A stretch of DNA of 64,000 bases from Ranitomeya imitator (taxonomy: Eukaryota): the NCBI RefSeq assembly GCF_032444005.1, contig NC_091283.1, positions 37,014,001 through 37,078,000 of the forward strand. Direction: 5' to 3'. The position numbers and the translations under genes are program-made. How positions within the stretch are numbered: the first letter of the stretch is position 1; each line of letters starts with the position of its first letter. The notes under the pieces are model-generated. The model made no database searches, was not told the DNA's origin, and was given only the letters and a program-made list of their open reading frames with translations. Of this stretch, positions 5,892 through 46,672 are shown piece after piece.

Positions 5892-5957
5892 ATGGCCTCA
5901 TATATTGAATTCGCCTTGATGTTATTATGTGGGACATGTACATTAGGGAAGAGACTG
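5892..5957 (+). CDS. CCN-like gene, exon 1 (signal peptide MASYIEFALMLLCGTCTLGKRL)
   Basis: ATG at 5892, 22 codons with a hydrophobic core, phase-0 GT donor at 5958. The 79-nt intron has a TACTAAT branch-like motif (6004-6010) and AG at 6035-6036, and joins exon 2 in frame. Not in the ORF track; read manually. Confidence 0.7.
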
Positions 5958-6036
5958 GTAGGGTTTTTCTCTGTGCCCCATTAAGTCTGCATTACTCTAT
6001 ATGTACTAATGTATATTCTTGTTTCTTGTCCTTAAG

Positions 6037-6241
6037 GGATGTCCTCTAACTTGTGAGTGCTCGGAGGTCCCTACATGTCCCCAAGGAGCAACACCGGTGC
6101 TGGACTCTTGCGGTTGCGGGTGCACAGTTTGTGTCCGAGGCCTTGGCTCTGTATGTGATGGGCTTAGACCGTGTGATGTTGCTAGAAATCTGATGTGCGA
6201 CTATCAGGAGGACCCCAGCTGGCAGCAAGGAGTTTGCAAGG
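6037..6241 (+). CDS. CCN-like gene, exon 2 (IGFBP module, 12 Cys)
   Basis: GCPLTCECSEVPTCPQGATPVLDSCGCGCTVCVRGLGSVCDGLRPCDVARNLMCDYQEDPSWQQGVCK has CCN IGFBP cysteine spacing. Acceptor cttaag; phase-1 donor GTTTGT at 6242 (weak). Confidence 0.9.
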
Positions 6242-7345
6242 GTTTGTCATCTTGTCTTCTATTACCACAGTCAATGAGTTGGTCACCTCAACAATTAGGC
6301 TGGACTATGTTGTCCTGTGCCCATATGTCAGAGAGGAGTGTGGGTCCTAAAGGTGCATTTATGACATATCCATAAATGTTTAAAGGTGAGAATATCCCTT
6401 TAAAGAGATTAAGTCAGCAAAAATGACTGTTTGATATAAAACAAGTGGATGGGAAGGTGCAATGTTGTGTTTGGCCACACCAAGGGTGCACCAAGCGCCT
6501 GTGCTTGGTTTGAACAGTCATTTTGTACTGACAATGTCTTTTAAATACATAAGTCTATTAACTCTATAATGAACACTTTTGCAACTTTTTAATATATATT
6601 GACCCTGATTCATCAATTTTATTTTTTCTAGTGCACTTTTCTAAATGCATCAAAATTCATGTAAAATATTTGATAAATTTGGCACAAATTAAAATATCCC
6701 TTTTCCCCCTTTTGCCATCATTTTGTGCCCTTAATGAAAAGTTGCTTGATCCCTTTAATAAGTTTGAAAAAGTTGCACATCAGTCTTCAAATTGGCAAAT
6801 GAAAAAAAATAGATTTTGTCTCATTGAGGCCAAATTTTCGCAAATGACGAATTAGCCGAGAACATCTGAATAATGACATTTGTAGCCAACCCAAAATATG
6901 GCCAGGACTGAAATAACCAGAGTAAAAATGTTGCAAAAAGCCATCATAAATTCAGTGCTATATTAAAAATGCCTAAAAATGGAACTTTCACAAAAAAAAG
7001 TGTATAAAAAAAAAGTAATAAATTCTTGCGTTTGTGTTCAGCTCTTCCCTGGAAACTGCTTCAGGAAACTCCCTGTTTTGGGGGAAGAATTTTTTTTGCT
7101 AAAGTGGTTTTGAAAAGTTTAGGGAAAAAATGTTTCTTTAGTGTTTTCTTATTTTTTTGCAGCCTCCATAGAATGAAGTGACTGCAAACTTGTAGCTTAA
7201 AGCTGGACATCCCCTTTAAGATTTGACATTGTCTAGTTTGGAGCAGATTCCGTCATGATCCACTTGAAAAAGCTATAAAAAAAAACCTTCTCATATGAAA
7301 AACAAAATGGACCTGACCTATAATTTGTTTTTCACCCCTTTTTAG

Positions 7346-7525
7346 TCCATCATGAGCGACGATCTTGCCTCCACAACGGCAATGAGATTCTCCATGGACG
7401 AGAGTTTGAGCTGGGCTGTGAAAGTTACTGCAAATGTGAGGATGGAAATATCAACTGTGCCCCTCTGTGCCCCCCACTGGAGAAACCCACCAACCCCAAC
7501 TGCAAAGAAATGCGATTAGTGACTG
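7346..7525 (+). CDS. CCN-like gene, exon 3 (VWC module, N-terminal part)
   Basis: After ccctttttag: (V)HHERRSCLHNGNEILHGREFELGCESYCKCEDGNINCAPLCPPLEKPTNPNCKEMRLVT; donor GTAAGA at 7526. Missed by the ORF track. Confidence 0.9.
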
Positions 7526-7860
7526 GTAAGAACATAAGTGGTATATAGACAGGGGTAAATCATTTTTGACTGGTAAGAACATATGTGGCATATAGACAGG
7601 GGTAAACCGTTTTTTTCCAAAAAGTGTGTTGCACCTTTTCAAAGGTTGTGTATGGGATTGCAGGTCAGCCCTACTCACTTTAATGGGGATGAGCTGTAAT
7701 ACGAGACACAACCCATCGGCAGGTTTGGTCCCATTCTTAGAAGAAAGCCACCATGTCTTGTCTGTACAACCTTATGACTGAGGGGTTTGTTTGTGTTCTC
7801 TACATTTCACACTTCGATCATTGTCAAGGACGGTTCATTACATACAGACTGTTCTCGTAG

Positions 7861-8016
7861 TTCCTGGTCAGTGCTGTGCCCAATGGAGATGTCTGGAGGA
7901 GTCAAGTGGGCTTGAAGACTCAAATGAAACCCGTAATGACTACCCAACTCTAGAAGATAAGTCTACAGATGAAGAGGCAAATATCAGGACCAGAAGAGAT
8001 GCCCCTGATTCAGGTG
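7861..8016 (+). CDS. CCN-like gene, exon 4 (end of VWC plus acidic hinge)
   Basis: After ttctcgtag: (V)PGQCCAQWRCLEESSGLEDSNETRNDYPTLEDKSTDEEANIRTRRDAPDSG. Donor GTGAGA at 8017; an alternative in-phase donor GTGGTG at 8014 would shorten the protein by one residue. Confidence 0.88.
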
Positions 8017-9138: not shown

Positions 9139-9338
9139 ATCCAGAACAGGATGAGGAGCTGCCGGAAGAACCTCAGCCCTGCAAACCCGATACTGAGTGG
9201 ACACCATGCTCCCGCACGTGTGGCTTTGGGAACTCGCTGCGAATAGTCTACGAGAAGGAAACTTGTATCCCTAAAGCTGAGAAGAGGATGTGTATGATCA
9301 GACCCTGCAAGGGCCAATACCCCAACGCCAACTACACG
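9139..9338 (+). CDS. CCN-like gene, exon 5 (TSP1 module, 6 Cys)
   Basis: After ttccacag: (D)PEQDEELPEEPQPCKPDTEWTPCSRTCGFGNSLRIVYEKETCIPKAEKRMCMIRPCKGQYPNANYT, with the WxxCSxTCG motif; phase-0 donor GTAAGA at 9339. Confidence 0.92.
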
Positions 9339-9880
9339 GTAAGAATAGAGAAGGGTCACAAGCAAATTTGGGCAAGTTCCGTGAAGCCACGTGTATACTG
9401 CGGGCTCCGGAGGTTAGCCCTCTCCATAAACTGCAGGTCCTGACAGTGTCATACAGCCGGCACCTGAGTCTCACTGCTGTCGTTATAGCTAGATTCTGTC
9501 TTCAATTGTGACAGTGGCATTTAAGAGATTGGAATTGGGATACGGGGCATCTCTTCCAACTCTTGCACCATCTCCTCCCCTCCCCCCACAACAACATTAT
9601 TGGGAATCTATGGCGTTTTAATGGCTATCAGGAGCCTACTGAATGCTCCGGTGACTGCACACCTATAAAACCTGTGACTGGACCTCATTGAGGAAAGATA
9701 ATTGTACAATGCACTGCAATTATAACAATATATTGTATGTATGGAAAGTTCCCTTTGGGGACCAACAAAAATCTATTTGTTTTTTAAGAAAAGTTCATAT
9801 CACAGCCCACGTTTACTGTAATGTAAATAAAATATATATATAAAAAATTTACCAAAAAACAAATTTTGTATAAATATATA

Positions 9881-10072
9881 GCGCTGGGGTCCTCAGTTCA
9901 AATCCTATCAAGGACAACATCTGCAAGGAGTTTGTATGTTCTCCCCATGTTTGTGTGGGTTTCCTCCCACATTCCAAAGACCTACTGATGGGGAATTTAT
10001 TTAGATTGTGAGCCCCATTGGGGACAGTGATGATAACGTCTGTAAAGCGCTGCGGGATGAGATAGAGCTATA

Positions 10073-10075
<3 letters not shown>
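9881..10075 (+). mobile_element. 5-prime-truncated SINE, same family as 4701-4922
   Basis: B-box remnant (gttcaaatcc), same core and tail (tgtaaagcgctgcgg...gctatata), running into (TA)n. Confidence 0.72.
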
Positions 10076-10149
<74 letters not shown>

Positions 10150-10791: not shown

Positions 10792-13700
10792 TGTTGTGAA
10801 TTCTGTGGCCAAGCTCCCTCCTGTGGATGAGAGTGGTACTGCGGCTTCTGAGTTTCCTTCCTCAGGTGATGAGGTTAAGTCGTTAGGTGCTGCTCTATTT
10901 AACTCCACCTGGTGCTTTGATCCTGGCCTCCAGTCAATGTTCTAGTATTGGTCTTGCTTCCTCCTGGATCGTTCCTGTGGCCTGTCTATCCTGCATAAGC
11001 TAAGTTTTGCTTGTGTTATTTTTGTTTGCTATTTTTTCTGTCCAGCTTGCTATATTGGTTTTTCTTGTTTGCTGGAAGCTCTGAGACGCAGAGGGAGCAC
11101 CTCCGTACCGTTAGTCGGTGCGGAGGGTCTTTTTGCCCCTCTGCGTGGTTGTTTGTAGGTTTTTGTGTTGACCGCAAAGCTATCTTTCCTATCCTCGGTC
11201 TATTCAGTAAGTCGGGCCTCACTTTGCTTAATCTATTTCATCTCTGTGTTTGTGTTTTCATCTTACTCACAGTCATTATATGTGGGGGGCTGCCTTTTCC
11301 TTTGGGGAATTTCTCTGAGGCAAGGTAGGCTTATTTTTCTATCTTCAGGGCTAGTTAGTTTCTCAGGCTGTGCCGAGTTGCATAGGGAGCGTTAGGCGCA
11401 ATCCACGGCTGCCTCTAGTGTGGTGTGTTAGGATTAGGGATTGCGGTCAGCAGAGTTCCCACGTCTCAGAGCTCGTCCTTTGTTTTTGGTATTTGTCAGG
11501 TCACTTTGTGTGCTCTGAACTTCAATGTCCATTGTGGTTCTGAATTACCTGTTCATAACAGTACTGAAGGCCCAAAGTACTAATGCTTCTCAATAGAGGG
11601 AAAAGAGAAGTTCTGAGACCATTTTTTTTTCTTTGCACTGTATTCTGTCTTTCTTTTCCCCTTTACATCAGGGTGGTTCAGAACACAGGTGTGGACATGG
11701 ACATTCAAGGTCTGTTCTCTTTGATGGATAATCTCGCTATAAATGTACAGAATATTCAAGATTTAGTGGTTCAGAATCCTATGTTAGAACCTAAAATTCC
11801 TATTCCTGAGTTATTTTCTGGAGATAGAGCTAAGTTTTTGAATTTTAAAAATAATTGTAAACTATTTCTGGCTTTGAAACCTCGCTCCTCTGGTGACCCA
11901 GTTCAACAAGTTAAGATCATTATTTCTTTATTACGTGGCGACCCTCAAGACTGGGCATTTTCCCTTGCGCCAGGAGATCCTGCATTATGTAATATTGATG
12001 CGTTTTTTCTGGCGTTCGGATTGCTGTACGACAAAACAAATTCAGTGGATCAGGCAGAGAAAAATTTGCTGGCTCTGTGTCAGGGTCAGGATGAGATAGA
12101 GATTTATTGTCAGAAGTTTAGAAAGTGGTCCGTGCTCACTCAATGGAATGAATGTGCGCTGGCAGCTATTTTCAGAAAGGGTCTCTCTGAAGCCCTTTAG
12201 TATGTCATGGTGGGATTTCCTATGCCTGCTGGTCTTAATGAGTCTATGTCTTTGGCCATTCAGATCGGTCGGCGCTTGCGCGAGCGTAAATCTGTGCACC
12301 ATTTGGCGGTATTATCTGAGCATGAACCTGAGCCTATGCAGTGCGATAGGACTTTGACCAGAGCTGAAAGGCAGGAACACAGACGTCAGAATGGGCTGTG
12401 TTTCTACTGTGGTGATTCCACTCATGCTATCTCCGATTGTCCCAAGCGCACTAAGCGGTTCGCTAGGTCTGCCACCATTGGTACGGTACAGTCGAAATTT
12501 CTTTTGTCCGTTACTTTGATCTGCTCTCTGTCTTCCTATTCTGTCATGGCATTTGTGGATTCAGGCGCTGCCCTGAATTTGATGGACTTAGAGTTTGCTA
12601 GGCGCTGTGGGTTTGTCTTGGAGCCCTTGCAGTGTCCTATTCCATTGAGAGGAATTGATGCTACGCCTTTGGCCAAGAATAAGCCTCAGTATTGGACCCA
12701 GCTGACCATGTGCATGGCTCCTGCGCACCAGGCGGATATTCGCTTTCTGGTGTTGTATAATCTGCATGATGTGGTCGTGTTGGGGTTGCCATGGCTACAA
12801 GTCCATAACCCAGTATTAGATTGGAATTCAATGTCTGTGTCCAGCTGGGGTTGTCAGGGGGTACATGGTGATGTTCCATTTCTGTCTATCTCATCATCCA
12901 CCCCTTCTGAGGTCCCAGAGTTCTTGTCTGATTACCGGGATGTATTCGATGAGCCCAAGTCCAATGCCCTACCTCCGCATAGGGATTGTGATTGTGCTAT
13001 CGATTTGATTCCTGGTAGTAAGTTTCCTAAGGGTCGACTGTTTAATTTATCTGTACCTGAGCACGCCGCTATGCGGAGTTACGTGAAGAAGTCTTTGGAG
13101 AAGGGTCATATTCGCCCGTCATCGTCGCCATTGGGAGCGGGGTTCTTTTTTGTGGCCAAGAAGGATGGTTTGCTGAGACCTTGTATTGATTACCGCCTTC
13201 TAAATAAAATTACGGTCAAATTTCAGTACCCCTTGCCGCTGCTGTCTGATTTGTTTGCTCGGATTAAGGGGGCCAGTTGGTTCACCAAGATAGATCTTCG
13301 TGGTGCGTATAATCTTGTGTGTATTAAACGGGGCGATGAATGGAAAACAGCATTTAATACGCCCGAAGGCCATTTTGAGTACCTGGTTATGCCATTCGGA
13401 CTTTCTAATGCTCCATCAGTGTTTCAGTCCTTTATGCATGACATCTTCCGAGAGTACCTGGATAAATTCCTGATTGTATACTTGGATGATAGTTTGGTCT
13501 TCTCGGATGATTGGGAGTCTCATGTGAAGCAGGTCAGAATGGTGTTCCAGGTCCTGCGTGCTAATTCTTTGTTTGTGAAGGGGTCAAAGTGTCTCTTTGG
13601 TGTTCAGAAGATTTCATTTTTGGGGTTCATTTTTTCTCCTTCTACTATCGAGATGGACCCTGTTAAAGTTCAGGCTATTTATGATTGGACTCAGCCAACA

Positions 13701-16507
13701 TATCTGAAGAGTCTGCAGAAGTTCCTGGGCTTTGCTAATTTTTATCGTCGCTTCATCGCTAATTTTTCTAGCATTGCTAAATCGTTGACTGATTTAACCA
13801 AGAAGGGTGCTGATGTGGTCAATTGGTCTTCTGCTGCTGTGGAAGCTTTTCAGGAGTTGAAGCGTCGTTTTTCTTCTGCCCCTGTGTTGTGCCAACCAGA
13901 TGTTTCGCTTCCGTTCCAGGTCGAGGTTGATGCTTCCGAGATTGGAGCAGGGGCTGTTTTGTCGCAGAGAAGTTCTGATTGCTCGGTGATGAAACCATGC
14001 GCCTTCTTTTCCAGGAAATTTTCGCCTGCTGAGCGAAATTATGATGTTGGCAATCGAGAGTTGCTAGCCATGAAATGGGCATTTGAGGAGTGGCGTCATT
14101 GGCTTGAAGGAGCTAAGCATCGCGTGGTGGTCTTGACTGATCACAAAAACTTGACTTATCTCGAGTCTGCCAAACGGTTGAATCCTAGACAGGCTCGTTG
14201 GTCGCTGTTTTTCTCCCGTTTTGACTTTGTGGTTTCGTACCTTCCGGGCTCTAAAAATGTGAAGGCGGATGCCCTGTCTAGGAGTTTTGTGCCCGATTCT
14301 CCGGGTTTGCCTGAGCCGGCGGGTATTCTCAAAGAGGGGGTAATTTTGTCTGCCATCTCCCCTGATTTGCGGCGGGTGCTGCAAAAATTTCAGGCTAATA
14401 AACCTGACCGTTGCCCAGCGGAGAAACTGTTTGTCCCTGATAGGTGGACGAATAAAGTTATCTCTGAGGTTCATTGTTCGGTGTTGGCTGGTCATCCTGG
14501 AATCTTTGGTACCAGAGATTTGGTGGCTAGATCCTTTTGGTGGCCGTCTCTGTCGCGGGATGCGCGTTCTTTTGTGCAGTCCTGTGGGATTTGTGCTCGG
14601 GCTAAGCCCTGCTGTTCTCGTGCCAGTGGGTTGCTTTTGCCCTTGCCGGTCCCGAAGAGGCCTTGGACACATATCTCTATGGATTTTATTTTGGATCTCC
14701 CCGTCTCTCAAAGAATGTCGGTCATTTGGGTGGTTTGTGATCGCTTCTTTAAGATGGTCCATTTGGTGCCCTTGTCTAAATTGCCTTCCTCCTCTGATTT
14801 GGTGCCGTTGTTTTTCCAGCATGTGGTTCGTTTACATGGCATTCCAGAGAACATCGTTTCTGACAGAGGTTCCCAGTTTGTTTCGAGGTTTTGGCGAGCC
14901 TTTTGTGCTAGGATGGGCATTGATTTGTCTTTTTCCTCGGCTTTCCATCCTCAGACAAATGGCCAGACTGAACGAACCAATCAGACCTTGGAAACATATC
15001 TGAGATGTTTTGTTTCTGCTGATCAGGATGATTGGGTGTCCTTTTTGCCTTTGGCTGAGTTTGCCCTTAATAATCGGGCCAGCTCGGCTACTTTGGTTTC
15101 GCCGTTTTTCTGCAATTCTGGGTTCCACCCTCGTTTCTCTTCAGGGCAGGTTGAGTCTTCAGACTGTCCTGGTGTGGATACTGTGGTGGATAGGTTGCAG
15201 CAGATTTGGACTCATGTAGTGGACAATCTGACTTTGTCCCAGGAGAAGGCTCAACGTTTTGCTAACCGCAGGCGCTGTGTGGGTCCCCGACTTCGTGTTG
15301 GGGATTTGGTTTGGTTGTCATCTCGTTATATTCCTATGAAGGTTTCCTCTCCTAAATTTAAGCCTCGTTTCATTGGTCCATATAGGATTTCTGAGGTTCT
15401 TAATCCTGTGTCTTTTCTTTTGACTCTTCCAGCTTCTTTTTCCATCCATAACGTGTTCCATAGGTCATTGTTGCGGAGATACGTGGCACCTGTGGTTCCA
15501 TCTATTGATCCTCCTGCTCCGGTTTTGGTTGAAGGGGAATTGGAGTATATAGTGGAGAAGATTTTGGATTCTCATGTTTCGAGACGGAAACTCCAGTATC
15601 TGGTTAAGTGGAAAGGTTATGGTCAGGAAGATAATTCCTGGGTCTTTGCCTCTGATGTCCATGCTGCCGATCTGGTTCGTGCCTTTCATGTGGCTCATCC
15701 TGGTCGGCCTGGGGGCTCTGGTGAGGGTTCGGTGACCCCTCCTCAAGGGGGGGGGTACTGTTGTGAATTCTGTGGCCAAGCTCCCTCTTGTGGATGAGAG
15801 TGGTACTGCGGCTTCTGAGTTTCCTTCCTCAGGTGATGAGGTTAAGTCGTTAGGTGCTGCTCTATTTAACTCCACCTGGTGCTTTGATCCTGGCCTCCAG
15901 TCAATGTTCTAGTATTGGTCTTGCTTCCTCCTGGATCGTTCCTGTGGCCTGTCTATCCTGCATAAGCTAAGTTTTGCTTGTGTTATTTTTGTTTGCTATT
16001 TTTTCTGTCCAGCTTGCTATATTGGTTTTTCTTGTTTGCTGGAAGCTCTGAGACGCAGAGGGAGCACCTCCGTACCGTTAGTCGGTGCGGAGGGTCTTTT
16101 TGCCCCTCTGCGTGGTTGTTTGTAGGTTTTTGTGTTGACCGCAAAGCTATCTTTCCTATCCTCGGTCACTTTGCTTAATCTATTTCATCTCTGTGTTTGT
16201 GTTTTCATCTTACTCACAGTCATTATATGTGGGGGGCTGCCTTTTCCTTTGGGGAATTTCTCTGAGGCAAGGTAGGCTTATTTTTCTATCTTCAGGGCTA
16301 GTTAGTTTCTCAGGCTGTGCCGAGTTGCATAGGGAGCGTTAGGCGCAATCCACGGCTGCCTCTAGTGTGGTGTGTTAGGATTAGGGATTGCGGTCAGCAG
16401 AGTTCCCACGTCTCAGAGCTCGTCCTTTGTTTTTGGTATTTGTCAGGTCACTTTGTGTGCTCTGAACTTCAATGTCCATTGTGGTTCTGAATTACCTGTT
16501 CATAACA
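10792..16507 (+). mobile_element. Full-length Ty3/Gypsy chromovirus-type (sushi-like) LTR retrotransposon
   Basis: LTRs 10792-11560 and 15759-16507, both TG...CA; G-rich PPT just before 15759; flanking duplication GACCGC (10786-10791 and 16508-16513). Confidence 0.97.
11692..15797 (+). pseudogene. gag-pol of the Gypsy element, one frame broken by a TAG at 12198-12200
   Basis: ORFs 11583-12200 and 12207-15797 are in the same frame. Contains capsid-like gag, CCHC knuckle (CFYCGDSTHAISDC), protease (FVDSGA), RT (YLDD), RNase H (VDAS...TDHKNL), integrase (SMDF, SDRG, QTER) and a C-terminal chromodomain (YIVEKILD...YLVKWKGY...NSW). Confidence 0.92.
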
Positions 16508-19037: not shown

Positions 19038-19358
19038 GTTCTGAAGGCAAACAACGTTTGCAGTCATGTCATGCGCTGGTCCCATCCTTCGCATCTCCGT
19101 TTCCGTGACTGCCTGTCTAGCCGCCCCTTACTCCCCAAATTCTGTGGCCTTTGCTCAGATGGACGTTTCTGTACACCGTTACTGAGTGAGACGCGCCCTG
19201 TGTTATTTCGATGTTCTCACCTCAACCGGAAGGTCACCCGCCAGGTTATGTGGGTGCAGAGGTGTCAGTGCGGGGGTAAGAGAGGAAAGAACAGGAAGAA
19301 GGACAAGGATGCGAGAAAGCCAAGCGAAGAGATGACAAACAGGGTGACAGATGATTAA
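19038..19358 (+). CDS. CCN-like gene, exon 6 (cystine-knot CT module, basic tail, stop)
   Basis: After tcttgtctttcgggcag: VLKANNVCSHVMRWSHPSHLRFRDCLSSRPLLPKFCGLCSDGRFCTPLLSETRPVLFRCSHLNRKVTRQVMWVQRCQCGGKRGKNRKKDKDARKPSEEMTNRVTDD*, with CCN CT motifs (PKFCG.C.DGR.CTP, F.C, V.W...C.C). The six exons total 1128 nt, an open 375-aa frame. Confidence 0.9.
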   Translation, partial: VLKANNVCSHVMRWSHPSHLRFRDCLSSRPLLPKFCGLCSDGRFCTPLLSETRPVLFRCSHLNRKVTRQVMWVQRCQCGGKRGKNRKKDKDARKPSEEMTNRVTDD

Positions 19359-23121: not shown

Positions 23122-23166
23122 GGGATGGACATAAGATTCAAGCGGCACACAAGGAAGGGATCGACC

Positions 23167-23215
23167 ATGAAGATCTTCATTCTCGCTCTGACCTTGGTCT
23201 TCCTCATACAGAGTG
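23167..23215 (+). CDS. Ly6/uPAR (three-finger) gene, exon 1 (signal peptide)
   Basis: ACCATGAAG start, MKIFILALTLVFLIQS(G), phase-1 donor GTAAGA at 23216. Confidence 0.85.
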
Positions 23216-27002: not shown

Positions 27003-27125
27003 GGGACGGACTGCGATGCTACACTTGTCTGTTTCCAACCCTTTCCCCAATGGACTGCATTAAATTCCCAGTGAAATGTCCTCCCAAAGAAAGATGCCTG
27101 TACTCCACCGCCTCCGGCAAAACAA
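27003..27125 (+). CDS. Ly6/uPAR gene, exon 2
   Basis: After ttaaccctacag: DGLRCYTCLFPTLSPMDCIKFPVKCPPKERCLYSTASGKT, with the LxCxxC start and five Cys; donor GTAAGT at 27126. Missed by the ORF track. Confidence 0.92.
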
Positions 27126-27294: not shown

Positions 27295-27494
27295 AAAACT
27301 TTCCATTTATCCTGCATGAGATGAGCTGCGCTGTGAACAGTCTGTGTGGGATCAGTGGTGAGAAGAGCACGCTGGGCGTCAACGTGACCTATCACAATGT
27401 TTGCTGCGACACCGACCTCTGCAACTCCGGCCCGGGGTCCAGATCATCCCTAAGCATCGCCCTTATACCGGCACTACTACTGCTCCTGTCATAA
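27295..27494 (+). CDS. Ly6/uPAR gene, exon 3 (CCxxxxCN motif and GPI-anchor signal)
   Basis: After ctttctcccacag: (K)NFPFILHEMSCAVNSLCGISGEKSTLGVNVTYHNVCCDTDLCNSGPGSRSSLSIALIPALLLLLS*. The domain has 10 Cys in total, one N-V-T sequon and a hydrophobic C-terminus. Full protein is 123 aa. Confidence 0.92.
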
Positions 27495-31327: not shown

Positions 31328-31489
31328 CTACTTGAGGGGTCTGGACACCGGGGCGTATGCAAGTTCAATTTCAACTTTGGCCGGGCACGTGCTAACAAAT
31401 TCTTCCCGCTTGTAGGCGTTTGTCAGGTAGCGATGGATTCCACTGAACTCTTCTGGGATCTTAAAGCCTCGATACTTCTCACAGACCAC
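31328..31489 (-). CDS. CLIC1: Chloride intracellular channel 1, last coding exon
   Basis: Minus strand after ctttttctgcag: [53 protein letters not shown], matching the CLIC C-terminus. Confidence 0.92.
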
Positions 31490-31499
31490 CTGCAGAAAA

Positions 31500-32470
31500 A
31501 GAGGGGCGAGACATGAGATTTCAGGAAGCTGAAGGCATAGAAGCAGAGAAGGGGGCGAGAGGCGCCACTTCAGGGAGCCGCAGGCAGAAAGGGGGTGAGA
31601 GGCGCCATATCAGGGTCCAGTAGCAGAAAGGGGGTGAGGCGACATTTCAGGGGTCCGGCAGGGAGGGGGGGCGAGAGGTGCCATTTCAGGAGCCCGGCAG
31701 ACAGGGAGGGGGGTGAGAGGCTCCATTTCAAGGACCCAGCAGACAGGAGGGGGGGGGGGGGGGGCGACAGGTGCCATTTCAGGGCCCAGCAGGCAGAGAA
31801 GGTGCATGAGGTGCCATTTCAGGGGCCCAGTAGGTAGGGAGGGGGCAAGAGGTGCCATTTCAAGGACCCAGCAGACAGGAGGGGGGGGGGGGGGGGCGAC
31901 AGGTGCCATTTCAGGGCCCAGCAGGCAGGGAAGGTGCATGAGGTGCCATTTCAGGGGCCCAGTAGGTAGGGAGGGGGCAAGAGGTGCCATTTCAAAGACC
32001 CAGCAGACAGGGAGGGGGCGTGAGGTGCCATTTCAGGGGCCCGGCAGGCAAGAGGTGCCATTTCAAGGACCCAGAAGGCAGAGAGGGGGCGAGAGGTGCC
32101 ATTTCAGTGGCTCAGCAGGCAAGAAGAGGGCGAGGGGTGCCATTTCAGAGGGCCAGCAGCAGGGAGGGGCGAGAGTTGCCATTTCAGGGGCCCAGCAGGC
32201 AGGGAGGGGGTGTGAGGTGCCATTTCAGGGGCCCGGCAGGGAGGGGGTGTGAGGTGCCATTTCAGGGGCCCGGCAGGGAGGGGGTGTGAGGTGCCATTTC
32301 AGGGGCCCAGCAGGCAGGGAGGGGGGTGAGGTGCCATTTCAGGGGCCCAGCAGGCAGGGAGGGGGGTGAGGTGCCATTTCAGGGGCCCAGCAGGCAGGGA
32401 GGGGGTGTGAGGTGCCATTTCAGAGGTCCAGCATGGAGGGAGGGGGTGAGAGGTGCCATTTCAGGGATTA
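31500..32470. repeat. G-rich minisatellite, about 40-44 bp unit, about 22 copies, in the last CLIC1 intron
   Basis: Unit gaggtgccatttcaggggcccagcaggcagggaggggggt; copies degrade toward the exon. Confidence 0.9.
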
Positions 32471-32786
32471 GAAAGACATATTTCCTATAAACTGGCAGAA
32501 CATGGATGAGGGGGATGGAGCTATTGCTTACAATGAGGGTTGGAGGAGCCCCTTCATATTTTGGTCCATGCTCACAGATGTTTTTTTACCTACCATTTTT
32601 ACCCGCTTTGATCTCGATTCTTCACTGACTGTACTTTAGCTGTGTAGGAGTCTAAGCTAAGAAAGGAACTCAGACACCATCTCTCTATTCTACAGCTCCC
32701 ACTGCCCTCCCCCCATGCTTTATCCTGCAGCTCTGCTCCCCAGGTCCATATCACAGATGATACTGGAAGGCTCTGGCGCCTCTCAC

Positions 32787-32968
32787 CTGGACTATGTGCA
32801 GCTTAGGGAGGAGGTTGCAGTCCGCTAGCGTCAGCTCGTCTCCATCCAGAAACTTGCGGTGAGACACGGTCTCGTCCTCGGCGCTGTTCTCATCTATTTC
32901 TTCCGGGAGGAGAGTGTTTAGGTACGAGTCCAGAATCTGCAGGGCCTTCAGGAGGCCTTTCTCCAGAG
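32787..32968 (-). CDS. CLIC1: CLIC1 coding exon (182 nt)
   Basis: (T)[60 protein letters not shown] with AG/GTGAGA boundaries. [13 protein letters not shown] and HIVQ match CLIC1. Confidence 0.93.
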
Positions 32969-33539
32969 CTGGGGAGTAGAAGGACCGGTTACACCAGGAA
33001 CGTATACAGATACGGAGAGAGCATACAGCACACCTAGCATACTATACAGTCAGTAACTAGAGTCTGGAGAAGTCTCCCTTCTCATTTAAAGCTCAGGTTG
33101 CTGCTCTGTCCACCATGCTTTACTCTGCAGCTCTGACAACTTTTCATCAAGACTGGAGCCTTGTGTCTCTTGTTGCTTCTGCAACAGAGGAAACTCCCCT
33201 GGGGCGAGATATGACCTCATGCACAACACAAACCACGGAAATCATGTGCAGTCAGCAAGTGGCGGCGGAGGGAGGAAGCTGTGGTTGTGACCGATAGTGA
33301 CGGGGCCTCCAGACTTCTGGAGAGCAAGCCAAAAAGTGAAGCTTCCCCCTTCCCAGACTGCTGAGGACTTCTATTGCATCAAGCCATAGAGGGCGAGGTG
33401 GGGCCGTAGGAAAAGAAACCCTCCTGAATATAGAAGGAGACCATCAATCATGGATCTCATATCCACCGCGGCTCCGTAAGAGATCGGGAAACAGCCGGGC
33501 ACCCAGAAGACAAGCGTCGTGAGGAGCGGTAAAGGCCTG

Positions 33540-35172: not shown

Positions 35173-35175
35173 TAC

Positions 35176-35992: not shown

Positions 35993-36481
35993 TGTAAAAT
36001 TTATATATCTATAGATAGAAAGATAGAGATATATATATTTTAATATGGTAAGTAACAAAATAAACCTGCATAATGAAATTTCTCACCAGTCATTTTTGTT
36101 TTCGGTTTCTTTTTCTCACTTGAGTAAAGATTCAGTATATACGGTACCCATGTAAAAGTATATGGTAGTTTTACTTATTTTTCAAGCAATTAAAAAAAAT
36201 TATCCTACATTACGGTATACAAAGATAGATAATAGATAGAGAGACATATACCGTATATCTATATATACCGTATATCTATCCCTCTATAAAAAGGTTAATG
36301 AGACTACTTCCGGACTACATTAAGCCTGAATTTCACGTTAGTGTGGTTTATTCCCACGATTGGATAAGGTCTGCAGACTGGATCCCTGCACTTAAATATG
36401 CTGCTCTGGTTTGTGCTCCCGAGTTTCAGGCTTTTGGGTGCGGATTACCATTTCTCGGGTCTTCGGGCGATTTGCACTTAC

Positions 36482-36588
36482 TTTGGTTCTGAGACGGGTT
36501 GGGATTCTTGATGTAGGCGGAGAATTTGGCAAAGACATCAAGTCCAGCGGTGTTTGATTCTGGGTTTTTGGCAGCCAACTTTGGGTAT
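36482..36588 (-). CDS. CLIC1: CLIC1 coding exon (107 nt)
   Basis: [35 protein letters not shown] with AG/GTAAGT boundaries; phases fit both neighbours. Confidence 0.93.
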
Positions 36589-37204
36589 CTGATGAAGAGA
36601 CGTACAGTGGGTCAGATGAAGGAATTCCTGCCTCGCGGCTCAGTAAGCATGCCCTAGTTTTCTTCTGTGCTCCATTATGTCCTGTCCACTCAACCGGATT
36701 CAAAAATCGGTCAGTAATGGCCAAAGTTTCCTCACTAGTTCTGTACAGGACATAGGGGACCTTCCAGGCTGCACTATACCCAATTTGTTGGTGACCCCCG
36801 GACTCCTAGCACCCAGGGCGCACACCTTACCAGCCCCACCTGACTGACGCTCCTGCTGGACTTTGCTGAGCTATTTTGCAAAAACAAATTTTTTTCTTTT
36901 GTTCTCAAATTCGGCACACACAAAAAAATAAGTACATTGTGCAGTTTGTGAGTCACAAGGATGGCTGCCCTTAGCCAAAGTTAGGTAGAACGAGCCAGTC
37001 TTACACCCGCGGCCTACCATCACCACAGTACAGCAGCAAGAGCCGAAGGAGACGTTTATTACTGTCCGCAGGCTCATGATTACTTAGGAGTAGCTACTGG
37101 GCAAACATTCACACACCCTGTGTCTACACCACCGTGTATAACTGTACCCATCTTTATAAATAATCCAACCATAGCCACAGGAAGAAGAGACACCTCAATC
37201 CTGG

Positions 37205-37790: not shown

Positions 37791-38193
37791 CTGTACTGAT
37801 CCTATTGCAGAATATGAAGGTGAACTTTCACTTATGTTGAAAACTTTCACAAGGTGGTATCTGGTAGAGGCGGAGTGTTGTGGTGCAGGTTAGCGCTTTC
37901 ATAGCCTTGCCACACCCCGCCCACTCTGTCCCCACCTCCACAAGGCGCCAGGGCGTAAAGGAGATGCCTACCAAGAAAATCTTGGCAAATGTCACCAATC
38001 TTTTCGGCTGGGTTGGTTGGCAAGTATGGATATTACCAAAATCTAAGAAAATAATATAAGCCATATGACAAAGTTCACCACGCGGATTCAGTCCATAATA
38101 TGGTGGCAATCGCCCAACGCTAGAGGTTAATGGGGCAGAAGTATGACCTCTGTCTACAAGAACATTTTTCCCGCTTGTGACCCATATACATAC

Positions 38194-38319
38194 TTTGGGG
38201 GGGCCAGGGTCTCCTCCAGGAACTCTTCTATCTTATTGGTGTCTGTTCGGACCTCTCCTCGGAACAATAGGAAAGGCGGCTGAGCTCCGGGTGCGATATC
38301 TTTTAGGATTTCTGGTTTC
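38194..38319 (-). CDS. CLIC1: CLIC1 coding exon (126 nt)
   Basis: [41 protein letters not shown](K) with AG/GTATGT boundaries. Confidence 0.93.
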
Positions 38320-38769
38320 CTAAGAAATAAAAAGGGCAAATTAGAATTATACTGAGCGCGTTGTACGAGTGCGATTATACCACTGCATACTTCGTACAGG
38401 CCGCCAAACCTGTAAAACTGGATCTCTGAGCATTAAAGTATAATTTATAGAACAGGTTGTGACAGTAACATTGACAAAACGAAGAAGGATCCGCATAATA
38501 TACCGTAATGGCGGAGAGATGGGGGAGGGTCCAACCTCTGGGCCCCCATTTATCTGGATAAAGGGCTCTCCAAGCTTTTCCTCTTGCTGCATACTTAATA
38601 TACCTTTTACTCACACAGTTGTGGACATTTTGCAGTCCGTTTCTTGAACTGTCCCGGCAAAATAGGGACTGTGGACAAGTGAGCGTTCTGTAACAGATCT
38701 GAAGGATGAAATCCATACAAGTCATCTCTTCATTTACTATGCAAAAATGGACAGACGCCTCCCCATTCT

Positions 38770-41700
38770 TCCACAGATTGGGGAAGGTCTCACAGGTGGC
38801 TCCTCTTACTCCAATAGATAATGGTAGCACCTGCGAGACCTATATATATAGAGGGGCCCATCTCCGAGACCTTGCCCGTTTCCCCCATACCTAGAGGTGC
38901 AGCCTGTGAGACCTTCCCCATTCTCCCATAGTTGTGCCGCCTGTGAGACCTTCCCCATTCTCCCATACATAGAGGTGCCACTTGTGAGACCTTCCCCATT
39001 TTCCCATACATAGAGGTGCCACCTGTGAGACCTTCTGAGACCTTCCCCATTCTCCCATAGAGGTGCCACCTGTGAGACCTTCCCCATTTTCCCATACATA
39101 GAGGCGCCACCTGAGGGACCTTCCCCTATTCTACCATACATAGAGGCGCCACCTGAAGGACCTTCCCCTATTCTACCATACACAGAGGAGCCGCCTGTGG
39201 GACCTTCATCATTTCCCCCATACCTAGAGGTGCCGCCTGTGAGACCTTCCCCTTTTTTCCATAGAGGAGCCGCCTGTGGAACCTTCCCCATTTCCCCCAT
39301 ACATAGAGGTGCTGCCTGTGAGACCTTCCCCATTCTCCCATACATAGAGGTGCCGCCTGTGAGACCTTCTCCATTCTCCCATACTGTTATGATGCAGTGG
39401 TCTAGGAGCAACATGGAACGAGCTCTGAGGGAAGTGGTAAGTGTACTGACCGCAGACCCTAAGCTCAACACAACACTAGAAGCAGCCGTGGAATGCTCCT
39501 AACTCTCCCTAGGCATCTCGTCACAGCCTAAGAGCCAACTACCCCTGAAGACAGAAGCAGGAAAACTATCTTGCCTTAGAGAAAATCCCCAAAGGATAGA
39601 TTAGCCCCCCACAAATAATGACTGAGTGGAGAGGAAAAAGACATACACAGAATGAAACCAGGATGAGCACAGGAGGCCAGTCTAGCTTGATAGATAGGAC
39701 AGGATGGAACACTGTGCGGTCAGTATAAAACACTACAAAAATCCACGCAGAGTAAACAAAAAATCTCCACACCTGACTAAAGGTGTGGAGGGTCACTCTG
39801 CTTCCCAGAGCTTCCAGCAAGACAGAAAATAATTCAAACTGATAATGCTGGACAAACAAAGAAAGAACAGAATGGATAAGTCCACAAACTATGGACAGAA
39901 AAAGTAAGCAAAAACTTAGCTTTGCTGAACTGGTCAGGATAACAGGGAACTCCAAAGAGATGTGAATCCAACCAGGAACTATTTACAAGTGGCACTAGCT
40001 GAAGGAACAGCCAGGCTAAAATATGCGAGAGAGGAGACGATAAGTGGAGGCAGCTGAATACAGCTAACTCCAAGGAGCAGCCATACCACTTGAAACCACA
40101 AGAGGGAGCCCAAGAGCAGAACTCACAACACATACATACTGTAGATGTTCCACCTGTGAGACCTTCCCCATTTCCCCCATACATAGAGGAGCCGCCTGTG
40201 GAACCTTCCCCATTTCCCCCATACATAGAGGTGCCGCCTGTGAGACCTTCCCCATTCTCCCATACATAGAGGTGCCGCCTGTGAGACCTTCCCCGTTTTC
40301 CCATAGAAGAGCCGCCTGTGGAACCTTCCCCATTCCCCCCATACATAGAGGTGCCGCCTGTGAGACCTTCCCCATTATCCCATACATAGAGGCGCCACCT
40401 GTGAGACCTTCTCCATTCTCCCATACATAGAGGTGCCGCCTGTGAGACCTTCCCCATTCTCCCATACATAGAGGTGCCGCCTGTGAGACCTTCCCCATTC
40501 TCCCATACATAGAGGTGCCGTCTGTGAGACCTTCCCCATTCTCCCATACATAGAGGTGCCGTCTGTGAGACCTTCCCCATTCTCCCATACATAGAGGAGC
40601 CGCCTGTGGAACCTTCCCCATTTCCCCCATACATAGAGGTGCCGTCTGTGAGACCTTCTCCATTCTCCCATACATAGAGGTGCCGTCTGTGAAACCTTCC
40701 CCATTATCCCATACATAGAGGCGCCACCTGTGAGACCTTCTCCATTCTCCCATACATAGAGGTGCCGTCTGTGAGACCTTCCCCATTATCCCATACATAG
40801 AGGCGCCACCTGTGAGACCTTCCCCATTCTCTCATACATAGAGGTGCCGTCTGTGAGACCTTCTCCATTCTCCCATACATAGAGGCGCCACCTGTGAGAC
40901 CTTCTCCATTCTCCCATACATAGAGGTGCAGTCTGTGAGACCTTCCCCATTATCCCATACATAGAGGCGCCACCTGTGAGACCTTCCCCATTATCCCATA
41001 CATAGAGGTGCCGTCTGTGAGACCTTCTCCATTCTCCCATACCTAGAGGTGCCGTCTGTGAGACCTTCCCCATTATCCCATACATAGAGGTGCCGCCTGT
41101 GAGACCTTCCCCGTTTTCCCATAGAGGAGCCGCCTGTGGAACCTTCCCCATTTCCCCCATACATAGAGGTGCCGCCTGTGAGACCTTCCCCATTATCCCA
41201 TACATAGAGGTGCAGTCTGTGAGACCTTCCCCATTCTCCCATACATAGAGGTGCCGCCTGTGAGACCTTCCCTATTCTCCCATACATAGAGGTGCCGCCT
41301 GTGAGACTTTCCCCATTCTCCCATACATAGAGGTGCCGCCTGTGAGACCTTCCCCATTATCCCATACATACAGGATCCGCCTGTGAGACCTTCCCCATTC
41401 TCTCATATATACAGGAGCCGCCTGTGAGACCTTCCCCATTATCCCATACATAGAGGTGCCGTCTGTGAGACCTTCCCCATTCTCCCATACATAGAGGTGC
41501 CGCCTGTGAGACTTTCCCCATTCTCCCATACATAGAGGTGCCGCCTGTGAGACCTTCCCCATTATCCCATACATACAGGAGCCGCCTGTGAGACCTTCCC
41601 CATTCTCTCATACATACAGGAGCCGCCTGTGAGACCTTCCCCATTCTCCCATACATACAGGAGCCGTCTGTGAGACCTTCCCCATTCTCTCATACATACA

Positions 41701-44330
41701 GGAGTCGCCTGTGAGACCTTCCCCATTCTCTCATACATAGAGGTGCCGCCTGTGAGACCTTCCCCATTCTCTCATACATACAGGAGTCGCCTGTGAGACC
41801 TTCCCTATTCTCCCATACATACAGGAGCTGCCTGTGAGACCTTCCCCATTCTCCCATACATACAGGAGCCGTCTGTGAGACCTTCCCCATTATCCCATAC
41901 ATAGAGGAGTCGCCTGTGAGACCTTCCCCTATTCTCCCATACATACAGGAGCCGCCTGTGAGACCTTCCCCATTATCCCATACATAGAGGTGCCGCTTGT
42001 GAGACCTTCCCCATTATCCCATACATACTACAGGAGCCGCCTGTGAGACCTTCCCCATTATCCCATACATAGAGGAGCCGCCTGTGAGACCTTCCCCATT
42101 ATCTCATACATAGAGGTGCCGTCTGTGAGACCTTCCCCATTCTCTCATACATAGAGGTGCCGCCTGTGAGACCTTCCCCGTTTTCCCATAGAAGAGCCGC
42201 CTGTGGAACCTTCCCCATTCCCCCCATACATAGAGGTGCCGCCTGTGAGACCTTCCCCATTATCCCATACATAGAGGCGCCACCTGTGAGACCTTCTCCA
42301 TTCTCCCATACATAGAGGTGCCGCCTGTGAGACCTTCCCCATTCTCCCATACATAGAGGTGCCGCCTGTGAGACCTTCCCCATTCTCCCATACATAGAGG
42401 TGCCGTCTGTGAGACCTTCCCCATTCTCCCATACATAGAGGTGCCGTCTGTGAGACCTTCCCCATTCTCCCATACATAGAGGTGCCGTCTGTGAGACCTT
42501 CCCCATTCTCCCATACATAGAGGAGCCGCCTGTGGAACCTTCCCCATTTCCCCCATACATAGAGGTGCCGTCTGTGAGACCTTCCCCATTATCCCATACA
42601 TACAGGAGCCGTCTGTGAGACCTTCCCCATTATCTCATACATAGAGGTGCCGTCTGTGAGACCTTCCCCATTCTCTCATACATAGAGGCGCCACCTGTGA
42701 GACCTTCTCCATTCTCCCATACATAGAGGTGCCGCCTGTGAGACCTTCCCCATTCTCCCATACATACAGGATCCGCCTGTGAGACCTTCCCCATTCTCCC
42801 ATACATAGAGGAGCCGTCTGTGAGACCTTCCCCATTCTCCCATACATAGAGGAGCCGTCTGTGAGACCTTCCCCATTCTCCCATACATAGAGGAGCCGTC
42901 TGTGAGACCTTCCCCATTCTCCCATACATACAGGATCCGCCTGTGAGACCTTCCCCATTATCCCATACATACAGGAGTCGCCTGTGAGACCTTCCCCTAT
43001 TCTCCCATACATACAGGAGCCGCCTGTGAGACCTTCCCTATTCTCCCATACATACAGGAGCAGTCTATGAGACCTTCCCCATTATCCCATACATACAGGA
43101 GTCGCCTGTGAGACCTTCCCCCATTCTCCCATACATACAGGAGTCGCCTGTGAGACCTTCCCCCATTCTCCCATACATACAGGAGCCGCCTGTGAGACCT
43201 TCCCCATTATCCCATACATACTACAGGAGCCGCCTGTGAGACCTTCCCCATTCTCCCATACATACAGGAGCCGCCTGTGAGACCTTCCCCATTATCCCAT
43301 ACATAGAGGTGCCGCCTGTGAGACCTTCCCCATTCTCCCATACATACAGGAGTCGCCTGTGAGACCTTCCCCTATTCTCCCATACATAGAGGAGCCGTCT
43401 GTGAGACCTTCCCTATTCTCCCATACATACAGGAGCAGTCTATGAGACCTTCCCCATTCTCCCATACATACAGGAGTCGCCTGTGAGACCTTCCCCTATT
43501 CTCCCATACATACAGGAGCCGCCTGTGAGACCTTCCCTATTCTCCCATACATACAGGAGCAGTCTATGAGACCTTCCCCATTATCCCATACATACAGGAG
43601 TCGCCTGTGAGACCTTCCCCCATTCTCCCATACATACAGGAGCCACCTGTGAGACCTTCCCCATTCTCCCATACATAGAGGTGCCGCCTGTGAGACCTTC
43701 CCCATTCTCCCATACATAGAGGTGCCGTCTGTGAGACCTTCTCCATTATCCCATACATAGAGGAGCCGTCTGTGAGACCTTCTCCATTCTCCCATACATA
43801 CAGGAGCCGTCTGTGAGACCTTCTCCATTCTCCCATACATAGAGGTGCCGCCTGTGAGACCTTCCCCATTCTCCCATACATACAGGAGCCGTCTGTGAGA
43901 CCTTCCCCATTATCCCATACATAGAGGTGCCGCTTGTGAGACCTTCCCTATTCTCCCATACATACAGGAGCCGTCTGTGAGACCTTCCCCATTATCCCAT
44001 ACATAGAGGTGCCGCTTGTGAGACCTTCCCTATTCTCCCATACATAGAGGTGCCGCTTGTGAGACCTTCCCCATTCTCCCATACATAGAGCAGCCGCCTG
44101 TGAGACCTTCCCCATTATCCCATACATACTACAGGAGCCGCCTGTGAGACCTTCCCCATTATCCCATACATAGAGGAGCCGTCTGTGAGACCTTCCCTAT
44201 TCTCCCATACATACATACATACAGGATCCGCCTGTGAGACCTTCCCCTATTCTCCCATACATAGAGGAGCCGCCTGTGAGACCTTCTCCATTATCCCATA
44301 CATACAGGAGCCGCCTGTGAGACTTTCCAC
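38770..44330. repeat. 41-bp minisatellite array, about 115 units, in a CLIC1 intron
   Basis: Unit tgtgagaccttccccattctcccatacatagaggtgccgcc; interrupted by a solo LTR; block duplications visible. Confidence 0.95.
39385..40130 (-). mobile_element. Solo LTR related to the Gypsy LTRs at 10792 and 15759
   Basis: TG...CA; minus strand starts TGTTGTGAGTTCTGCTCTTGGGCTCCCTCTTGTGG versus TGTTGTGAATTCTGTGGCCAAGCTCCCTC; 5-bp TSD CATAC. Confidence 0.88.
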
Positions 44331-46562
44331 GACTCCACATACACATTCATGATCCCTATGACAGTGATGTAACCTCTCTCAGGGAACACAGGACTGCTGC
44401 CTACAAGGCTCCTAGACCCCCGAAAAAACTTTGTAAGACCACCCATCTTCCATTTATAATACTAGGATCCATATTGGTGTGATGTGGATGAAAGACCTAC
44501 AGACCCCTAAGGGTGTGCGACTGCTGCCCTCTAAAGATCATCTACATTTTTATAAAGAGACTTTGGTTGCAAAACTCTACATACCCCACAATAACTATCT
44601 TTTATTGTTTTAGGTATACAGCCCCTATGCAGACCAGTGTGTCTCTAGTTTTATCCTGTAGCCACGCATTAGCTCCCTTTTCTCCATCTTGTCTCCTACC
44701 ATCTGTAGAGGGGGCAGATGCAGGAGCATAACCCGACTACAGGTTTTGTTTGTAGTCTGTAACCAGGGTGACATACAGGTCTGCATAAGAGCTGTATACG
44801 TAAAACGATAGTCTGAAGACAAATTAAAAAAAAAAAATTTTTTTTGACAAGCTTGTTTTAGGATGCATTGGACACAAGGCACACGTGGTTGCAAAAGTGT
44901 ACACGCCCTTTAACTTTTCACAACTATACTTCTGTTTCTTTACTGATTTTGCAAACTGAGCGTGGAAAGGAAAACAGCAGCAGGGCCAAAAAAGGTTTCC
45001 GATGATTGAATGAATGGCTTTCGCTGATGGCAGGCAGCCACCATCTAATGGGGACGAGGGCAGAGACAGGGGTGACTCACGGCAGCGGCTCATCACACAG
45101 CACATCTCAGGGACCTGCTCTGCGCACTGCCTTCATTTCTACTGTTATTATTGCTTTTAGGCAGGTTGACCGCTCATAAAAGTGCAGAGCTGCAATGTAT
45201 GCAAAAGGTCAGCCTCTCCCCTATCCAAAATGGCTGATAACAGGGAACAATAGTTTGTATGCAAACAAACCACATAAAGCCCGAGGAAGGCCTTAAGTCA
45301 AGATAGAAGCAAATCATTCTTGCATTCTTGCATCAAGGAAGCCAATGCATTCACCCCCTTAGTGACGTAGCTAATTTTGACCTTCCTGACCAGGCCAAAT
45401 TTTGAAATCTGACCAGTGTCACTTTATGGGGTAATAACTCTGGAACACATTCAGATCCCACTGATTCTGAGACCCCATCACTGATCGAAGGGGAGACCAG
45501 CGCTCACTGGGCACCGCCATCACGTGTCGTTCCACCGCATCACAGCCCCGAGACTAGGGGACTGGAAAATATGGCCCCGATTGTGTTTTCCAGGGCATCA
45601 GCTACCTAGCAGAGATCCCGCAGATTTTTTTTTAACTTTGGGCGGGGAAGGCGATATACCCTTATTCCTGGTTGCCGTTTGAAAACAGCGATGAGGGAAT
45701 AAGGCTCCTTAGCGGCTGCCGTTTTAATGTGTATCAGAGGTCGTTTAGGGGTTAATTAACTCTCCTCTTTACGCAATTTGCGATAATCATTTAACCTGAT
45801 TTTCATAAGTGCAGCTCTTACTAGCGCCTCTCGGTGGTTCTTTCGTAAGCCTCTACAGCTCCTTTTGGTACGGTTCCTCTTCGGGGAATGGGTATAGGAA
45901 GCGCAGCAGAACTCCTTGGTGGATACCTGCTGCTTGTTTGGTGTTATTCCTGCAGCGCAAAAAAATGTACCACCAACTCTCGTCATATCCCTGTGGTACC
46001 ACAACTGGAAACGCTGCTTGATTTAGTTTATCGGAAAAAAAAAAATTGGTGGGAGGCTCCCATATTGGTGCCATATTGCAAAGGTTAATTGGAGCAGGGC
46101 ACAACCAAGTCCGTGATTCCCTTAGTTTTCAGTAGGCTGCCTTTCTACTTATTGGTTGGATACGATTGCCAAACGGTCATCGGTGACCCCTTTATTCCCG
46201 GCTATAGAGTTGGGACCTCATCCAGCGTCCAGTCTGGTGTTCCACAATGGCCGGATCAGGGCAGTTTTTACATCTGTGGCTGGCATCTAACACTTACAAG
46301 CCCATGCAATGTCATGACGTCGCAGAGTGTAATAAGTGAGGATGCCAACTGGAGACGTGAGGACTACCCTCATCTAGATGGCAATGAGGACCGAACATGA
46401 CTTAAGACCAGAGCAGAACAAGTCTTTTTTGTTCAGCTCTACTGGCCAACCATTTCTGCTCCACATACCCGGATCACAAGGTCTGGCCAGGGCAGTAAGG
46501 GTGAAGGGTTGTGCCCACTTAGGTTCCTAAAAGTTCTTGATTAGACACCAACAGTTCCTCAC

Positions 46563-46672
46563 CTTTTCATATCGACAGTGGTGACATTGAACGTGACTCC
46601 TTTCAACCAGAGGACCATGAAGAGACGCTGGGAAAAGGGACAATTTCCAATGGTCTGTCCATCAGAGCCCGC
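46563..46672 (-). CDS. CLIC1: CLIC1 coding exon (110 nt) with the CPFS redox motif
   Basis: [36 protein letters not shown](R) with AG/GTGAGG boundaries. The five exons give 228 aa; adding the usual 13-aa first exon would give 241 aa, the length of human CLIC1. Confidence 0.93.

Follow-up and report, generated by a model that had tools for sequence, protein, structure and literature searches.

Does the neighbourhood of CLIC1 in frogs preserve, beside the class III region of the MHC (major histocompatibility complex), a counterpart of the DDAH1-CCN1 gene pair? This question is raised by a stretch of 64,000 nucleotides from Ranitomeya imitator (NC_091283.1, positions 37,014,001 to 37,078,000 of the forward strand; hereafter the window), for which an earlier note had reported a CCN-like gene, a Ly6 gene and CLIC1, in this order and on the plus, plus and minus strand, respectively. 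The block was proposed there to keep an ancestral DDAH-CCN linkage, the CCN and Ly6 genes having been lost or moved in mammals. All three genes were found, ordered and oriented as described: an intact CCN gene of six exons (5892-19358, +), a Ly6/uPAR gene of three exons (23167-27494, +) and CLIC1, of which five coding exons were read (31328-46672, -). The window is gap-free vertebrate DNA with many tandem arrays and transposon remains, and for each exon the closest relatives were found in neobatrachian frogs. Textbooks list six CCN genes in vertebrates, and the extra genes of fishes are treated as copies of CCN1. The proposal is partly supported by our analysis: the CCN gene represents a new, uncharacterised lineage of this known family, already catalogued under misleading names, and in amphibians this lineage takes part in a second divergent DDAH-CCN pair.

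The exons of the window were searched singly, and in the phylogenetic analysis database orthologues were used in place of the window's own CCN protein. Each CCN exon, taken alone, found its best matches in one amphibian clade (56-85% identity). The exon encoding the cystine knot was searched against a representative library of 1.84 billion proteins, where the top three matches came from ranid frogs (68% identity, E 4.8e-37), Spea bombifrons and Pelobates, far above the remainder; after a large gap they were followed by a coelacanth protein, carp ccn1l1 and others, and an orthologue in the caecilian Geotrypetes was recovered as well. When the complete Spea and coelacanth proteins were used as queries in word-index searches, orthologues were obtained from at least 12 frog genera (including the pipid Hymenochirus), from the newt Pleurodeles and from the lungfish Protopterus, together with a panel of named relatives (CCN1, ccn1l1, ccn1l2, CCN2, CCN3, CCN4 and CCN5). 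The names under which the orthologues are filed conflict with one another: CCN2-like, CCN3-like, CCN5-like, NOV homolog, kielin/chordin-like and CYR61-like are all in use. No amniote member was returned by the searches with the Spea and coelacanth proteins, which are limited by the index and do not prove loss; the lineage has apparently been lost in amniotes.

A careful maximum-likelihood tree was built from 67 CCN proteins and 383 columns; three long or near-duplicate rows (an Amia fragment, a CCN4 isoform of the naked mole-rat and a short Xiphophorus protein) had been left out. In this tree the orthologues form a clade in which a sawshark protein is followed by coelacanth plus lungfish on one side and by caecilian, salamander and frogs on the other, salamander and frogs being closest to each other. 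Support is 99/99 at the base and 98/92 for the sarcopterygian part, and the branching matches the species tree. The clade falls within a CCN1-type group (84/90), and a second group comprising CCN2, 3, 4 and 5 (98/90) stands opposite it. Two changes of cysteine motifs are found only in the window gene and in all members from coelacanth to frogs, namely the family-wide CGCC of the IGFBP motif changed to CGCGC, and the GRCC of the knot changed to GRxC; in the sawshark protein the general state is retained. Since the clade is old, congruent with the species tree and marked by two shared cysteine changes, the window gene is not a recent frog-specific duplicate of another CCN gene, a possibility considered in the earlier note, and its origin is no younger than the base of the sarcopterygians. 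Separate CCN1 paralogues are present in coelacanth and caecilians in addition to this lineage, which is therefore not the CCN1 orthologue itself. On the sequences compared, it is a separate and old lineage of CCN1 type, present in coelacanth, lungfish, caecilians, salamanders and frogs, and the shark protein is probably a relative of it.

Such names as CCN3-like, CCN2-like, CCN5-like and NOV homolog would suit a different origin, in which the gene split off from CCN2 or CCN3 within one lineage and then evolved fast. The position of the clade within the CCN1-type group, apart from the clade of CCN2, 3, 4 and 5, argues against this, as do the separate true CCN3 genes of coelacanth and caecilians. 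For CCN3, to which the approximately unbiased (AU) test was confined in this respect, the constraint costs 47 log-likelihood units and is rejected (p-AU 0.003). An offshoot of this kind is hardly credible.

The neighbours of the CCN lineage can be read in Spea bombifrons, where DDAH (-), CCN (+), Ly6 (+) and CLIC (-) follow one another within 24 kb. The first gene called at this locus (319 residues, minus strand) has exons that match DDAH1 structures in the PDB (E 1.9e-22 and 7e-15), DDAH1 being the only DDAH reference available there, and the third is a UPAR_LY6 gene of 123 residues on the plus strand. The DDAH gene that had been predicted next to the CCN gene is thus present directly upstream of the Spea orthologue, on the opposite strand and head-to-head. 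CCN, Ly6 and CLIC have the same order in Pyxicephalus as in the window, so that the order recurs in members of two further frog families, and the Ly6 and CLIC exons of the window show 63-97% identity to their Spea counterparts where compared. In Pleurodeles the CCN orthologue (NDU88_000797) is on the same chromosome as a DDAH fragment (NDU88_000791), six locus tags away from it. A tblastn search with the Spea DDAH exons found no DDAH exon in the window itself.

The same geometry is known from CCN1. In gar, a DDAH_eukar gene, identified by the Pfam tag of the called gene, lies 1.9 kb upstream of CCN1 (CM082500.1), on the opposite strand and head-to-head, and in human DDAH1 and CYR61/CCN1 have been described with divergent promoters (PMC4309439), in agreement with the DDAH1-CCN1 pairing on which the proposal was built. 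Two paralogous DDAH-CCN pairs therefore share their geometry, and the second of them adjoins CLIC1, as had been predicted. The human class III order LY6G6C, C6orf25, DDAH2, CLIC1 and MSH5 (PMC1309616) likewise agrees with the neighbourhood of the LY6G cluster, DDAH2 and CLIC1 given in the earlier note. From its position, and from an identity of only 54-56% to mammalian DDAH1, we infer that the frog gene is putatively DDAH2. As regards the ancestral linkage, a second head-to-head pair is found in Spea, and its DDAH member would be DDAH2. The flanking genes seen do not contradict the expectation of class III neighbours: they are CLIC1 in the window and the DDAH-family gene upstream of the CCN gene in Spea. 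No exon of MSH5 or of another gene was recognised in 47000-64000, where the open reading frames (ORFs) of 48400-64000 were read from stop to stop. In 1-5400, looked at in the list of ORFs of 70 aa only, no other gene was noticed.

The most economical account of both pairs is that a divergent DDAH-CCN pair was already present before the vertebrate genome duplications. One copy would have become DDAH1-CCN1 (human 1p22), and the other would have become DDAH2 and the CCN lineage of the window, together with a Ly6 gene and adjoining CLIC1, in the class III neighbourhood of the MHC; the CCN gene would later have been deleted in amniotes, which would have brought DDAH2 next to CLIC1. We consider this account probable, and under it the second DDAH-CCN pair would owe its origin to whole-genome duplication. 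If it is true, the deletion between DDAH2 and CLIC1 can be dated to the amniote stem.

Several observations weigh against this account. The block of DDAH, CCN, Ly6 and CLIC is documented in amphibians only (in anurans, and through locus tags in the newt), and no Xenopus member of the CCN lineage was returned by the index-limited searches mentioned above. The first Spea DDAH exon, submitted to a word-index search, matched unnamed fragments, one primate fragment named DDAH1 and the Pleurodeles fragment. In the best tree the closest clade to the CCN lineage comprises ray-finned ccn1l1 and ccn1l2 together with the gar 'CCN1-like' gene, at moderate support (81/88), and this gar gene has no DDAH within 10 kb and a DUF4647 gene upstream (ten ORF pieces of this neighbour gave no Pfam match); either the linkage has been broken there or the pairing with ccn1l is wrong. 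Finally, in a first quick tree that included the long rows, the other vertebrate CCNs all grouped to the exclusion of the clade, for which reason its deep position needs care, and long-branch attraction may have influenced where it is placed, given the long branches of the clade. Quick and careful trees agree on the CCN1-type placement after the three rows were dropped.

Part of these observations would be expected if the window gene were simply the sarcopterygian orthologue of fish ccn1l1/ccn1l2, and if its position between DDAH and CLIC1 were due to a rearrangement in the amphibian stem that resembles DDAH1-CCN1 by chance. The sister relationship of the clades in the careful tree and the restriction of the documented synteny to amphibians are in line with this, and so are the ccn1l genes of gar, catfish, plaice and Brienomyrus, none of which has a DDAH or CLIC gene within 10 kb. 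However, chance would have to recreate both the neighbour and the strand arrangement, and to do so beside the one remaining DDAH paralogue. Recognisable orthologues of CLIC1 and DDAH2 have been reported to be lacking in zebrafish (PMC1309616), and the absence of the linkage from ray-finned fishes can therefore be explained equally well by loss and by a late origin. Moreover, an ancestral pair is compatible with the gene being orthologous to ccn1l, so that the two explanations partly overlap. As to a sister relationship with CCN1, which the earlier note had put forward for checking, the clade belongs to the CCN1-type group and a tree constrained to unite it with canonical CCN1 is 2.8 log-likelihood units worse and is not rejected by the AU test (p-AU 0.355), although the best tree prefers ccn1l1/ccn1l2. 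A chance likeness produced by rearrangement appears unlikely to us, and an ancestral DDAH-CCN pair remains the explanation that we favour.

Another CCN1-like group of teleosts (si:ch211-106h11.3/'CCN1') lies tail-to-tail with a DEAD-box helicase of 427 aa in cod and Xenentodon, and the helicase exons were read as DDX39 type (cod locus 21200-27810, Xenentodon locus 19276-23036). The human DDX39 paralogues are found in the MHC and in its paralogous region on 19p13. This arrangement hints that other CCN1-type genes are also located on MHC-paralogous segments. It is conceivable, and we suggest it tentatively, that the CCN1-type genes constitute a small family, its members being paralogues that arose by whole-genome duplication and lie on the MHC paralogy group, founded by the divergent DDAH-CCN pair that preceded the duplications: the frog and coelacanth copy would then be the one of the MHC chromosome itself and CCN1 that of 1p22, whereas the si:ch211-106h11.3 group and ccn1l1/2 would be further copies. 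In that case the split of CCN1-type genes from CCN2/3/5 would be older than the duplications, and several new anchor genes would become available for reconstructing the proto-MHC.

The CCN gene of the window probably encodes a secreted matricellular protein of four modules (IGFBP-like, VWC, TSP1 and cystine knot; Table 1). All its splice junctions are of the GT..AG type, their phases agree and the frame is kept, giving a predicted protein of about 375 residues. Exon 1 provides a hydrophobic leader, and the end of the peptide aligns with the N-terminus of the orthologue in Mixophyes and in Staurois. The PF00219 match of exon 2 amounts to 25.6 bits on the exon alone, slightly below the whole-protein cut-off of 28, and this exon shares 56-61% identity with frog orthologues. 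The VWC assignment of exons 3a and 3b is based on their alignment (52-61%) with the VWC region of PF00093-bearing orthologues and on the cysteine pattern as read; the one 33-residue piece searched gave no Pfam match. Exon 3b, for which an alternative in-frame donor is possible at 8014, has weak matches to salamander and frog orthologues. In the hinge downstream of the VWC module, at 7980-8000, the basic R-T-R-R stretch is followed by D. The TSP1_CCN match of exon 4 is above its cut-off of 27 bits, with 68-85% identity to frog orthologues. The cystine-knot exon has weak Pfam matches to Cys_knot (15.4 bits, cut-off 24) and DAN, and it encodes 8 cysteines instead of 10, with GRxC replacing GRCC and the final cysteine absent; that it is homologous to the CT module of CCN proteins is evident from its matches in the representative library.

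Table 1. Features read in the window, with positions counted from its first nucleotide.
Feature	Position	Strand	Basis
CCN exon 1, start codon and signal peptide (22 codons)	5892..5957	+	donor GT at 5958
CCN exon 2, IGFBP-like module with clade-specific CGCGC	6037..6241	+	PF00219, E 1.9e-5; junctions read
CCN exon 3a, first part of VWC module	7346..7525	+	acceptor and donor read; 61% identity to Mixophyes
Extra phase-1 intron within VWC module, GT..AG	7526..7860	+	Spea intron at same codon
CCN exon 3b, end of VWC module and acidic hinge with basic R-T-R-R	7861..8016	+	junctions read
CCN exon 4, CCN-type TSP1 module	9139..9338	+	PF19035 TSP1_CCN, E 4.8e-16, 59.2 bits
Ty3/gypsy-type LTR (long terminal repeat) retroelement, chromovirus-type	11583..15797	+	within the 9.7-kb CCN intron between TSP1 and C-terminal exons
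CCN exon 5, C-terminal cystine-knot module, lysine/arginine-rich tail, stop	19038..19358	+	stop codon 19356-19358
Ly6/uPAR exon 1, signal peptide	23167..23215	+	donor GTAAGA; assigned by resemblance only
Ly6/uPAR exon 2, first five cysteines, LRCYTC start	27003..27125	+	junctions read
Ly6/uPAR exon 3, last five cysteines, hydrophobic GPI-signal-like tail, stop	27295..27494	+	PF00021, E 0.0023
CLIC1 exon 6, last coding exon, with stop	31328..31501	-	best PDB match CLIC1
CLIC1 exon 5, GST C-terminal-like part	32769..32972	-	best PDB match human CLIC1
CLIC1 exon 4	36477..36629	-	72% identity to Spea CLIC exon
CLIC1 exon 3	about 38187..38330	-	CLIC-like_N, 61.7 bits; 81% identity to Spea
41-bp tandem array, about 101 copies, 89% matches	40153..44328		CLIC1 intron between exons 2 and 3
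CLIC1 exon 2, CPFSQRLFM redox-site region	46562..46672	-	CLIC-like_N, 77.9 bits; 97% identity to Spea

The CCN copy of the window might also be a decaying or unexpressed gene, as the 4.2-kb Ty3/gypsy element in its last intron, the extra intron that splits the VWC module, the loss of two of the ten knot cysteines and the lack of any Ranitomeya imitator match in the protein searches could suggest. Against decay stand the open reading of all exons with their GT..AG junctions and consistent phases, and the full-length orthologues found on transcript-sized Logan contigs of other species. The extra intron and the cysteine changes, furthermore, are common to orthologues across amphibians and lobe-finned fishes and are therefore old features of a maintained gene. 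Decay or silence of this copy is accordingly very unlikely in our judgement.

The VWC module varies considerably among the orthologues. Ranitomeya and Spea share the codon at which an intron splits it (about 11275-11413 of the Spea locus), and the VWC part forms a single block in the cod gene and in CCN1 and ccn1l of gar. In most frogs (Spea, Mixophyes, Rhinophrynus and the window gene) the module is single; it is absent from the ranoid orthologues (264-268 aa) and present in several tandem copies in Pelobates, with a protein of up to 954 aa. Newt and caecilian orthologues are about 520 aa long. Part of this variation in copy number may be annotation error.

The Ly6 gene of the window belongs to the Ly6/uPAR family by its ten cysteines (5 + 5), its end motif of the CCxxxxCN type (CCxxxLCN, read as CCDTDLCN), its signal peptide and its tail resembling a glycosylphosphatidylinositol (GPI) signal. 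Its exon 1 terminates in L-I-Q-S-G, as does the Spea Ly6 exon 1, and identity to Spea is 70% over 44 residues for exon 2 and 63% over 59 residues for exon 3. The PF00021 score reaches 18.8 bits on exon 3 alone (cut-off 24.8), and the genes at the same position in Spea and Pyxicephalus carry this domain. Its atlas neighbours are generic Ly6/uPAR clusters, with no LY6G6 or LY6G5 match singled out.

The CLIC gene of the window is CLIC1, as judged from its C-terminal exons, which score best against this member among CLIC1-6 in the PDB: the last exon reaches 77-79 bits with CLIC1 and at most 62.4 with CLIC2-6, and exon 5 reaches 97.7 bits as compared to at most 89.3 with the other CLICs. Position 46672 corresponds to the first codon of exon 2, so the gene extends beyond the range given for the block in the earlier note. 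Exon 1 was not found by motif scans, either in the window or at the Spea locus. A G+C-rich 16-bp tandem repeat (34 copies, 99% identity) occupies 47508-48049, about 0.8 kb beyond exon 2, in the region where exon 1 and the promoter might be expected. A shorter array related to the 41-bp array of the CLIC1 intron is found at 38866-39384 in the same intron, and such arrays give rise to many spurious long minus-strand ORFs.

The retroelement in the last CCN intron (about 4.2 kb) appears young. It comprises a gag ORF (11583-12200) and an unbroken pol ORF of 1196 aa (12207-15797), with Pfam matches to RVT_1, RT_RNaseH, Integrase_H2C2, rve, Chromo and Retrotrans_gag. Relics of transposases of the Tc1/mariner type (DDE_3, HTH_Tnp_Tc3_2) are located in the CCN intron (16794-17378 and 18309-18623) and downstream of the Ly6 gene (28133-29056).

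In the open-licence papers and preprints searched, no account was found of a CCN gene in the MHC or of a CCN paralogon, and the amphibian MHC papers examined for CLIC1, DDAH, CCN and Ly6 mentioned none of them. The lineage described here, traced from coelacanth to frogs, adds a further member to the CCN family that genome catalogues have filed under contradictory names. The second DDAH-CCN pair, parallel to DDAH1-CCN1, is of the kind that defines paralogy regions and serves the reconstruction of the ancestral MHC, and a CCN gene that lies between DDAH and CLIC1 offers a new marker which can be used to trace the assembly of the MHC class III neighbourhood. For CCN biology, the lineage would offer a natural variant with an altered IGFBP motif and a knot predicted to lack one disulfide, as well as a VWC copy number that ranges from none to several among amphibians.

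The lineage can finally be set beside three known systems. With CCN1 and its neighbour DDAH1 (human 1p22.3; CM082500.1 in gar) it has in common the four CCN modules, the CCN1-type clade and, as seen in the Spea locus, the divergent head-to-head position beside DDAH. It differs from CCN1 as a separate lineage with CGCGC rather than CGCC and GRxC rather than GRCC, with a long basic tail and, in frogs, the extra VWC intron, and with Ly6 and CLIC1 on its other flank. The fish genes ccn1l1 and ccn1l2 (cyr61l1 and cyr61l2), with the gar 'CCN1-like' gene, are likewise extra CCN1-type paralogues that mammals do not have; unlike the window lineage, they retain the family-wide cysteine motifs and have no DDAH, Ly6 or CLIC neighbour within 10 kb where their surroundings were read. 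The human segment LY6G6C-MPIG6B-DDAH2-CLIC1-MSH5 resembles the frog block in that DDAH is near CLIC1 with Ly6/uPAR genes in the vicinity, but in frogs a CCN and a Ly6 gene stand between DDAH and CLIC1, whereas the listed human order has neither of them there (PMC1309616).

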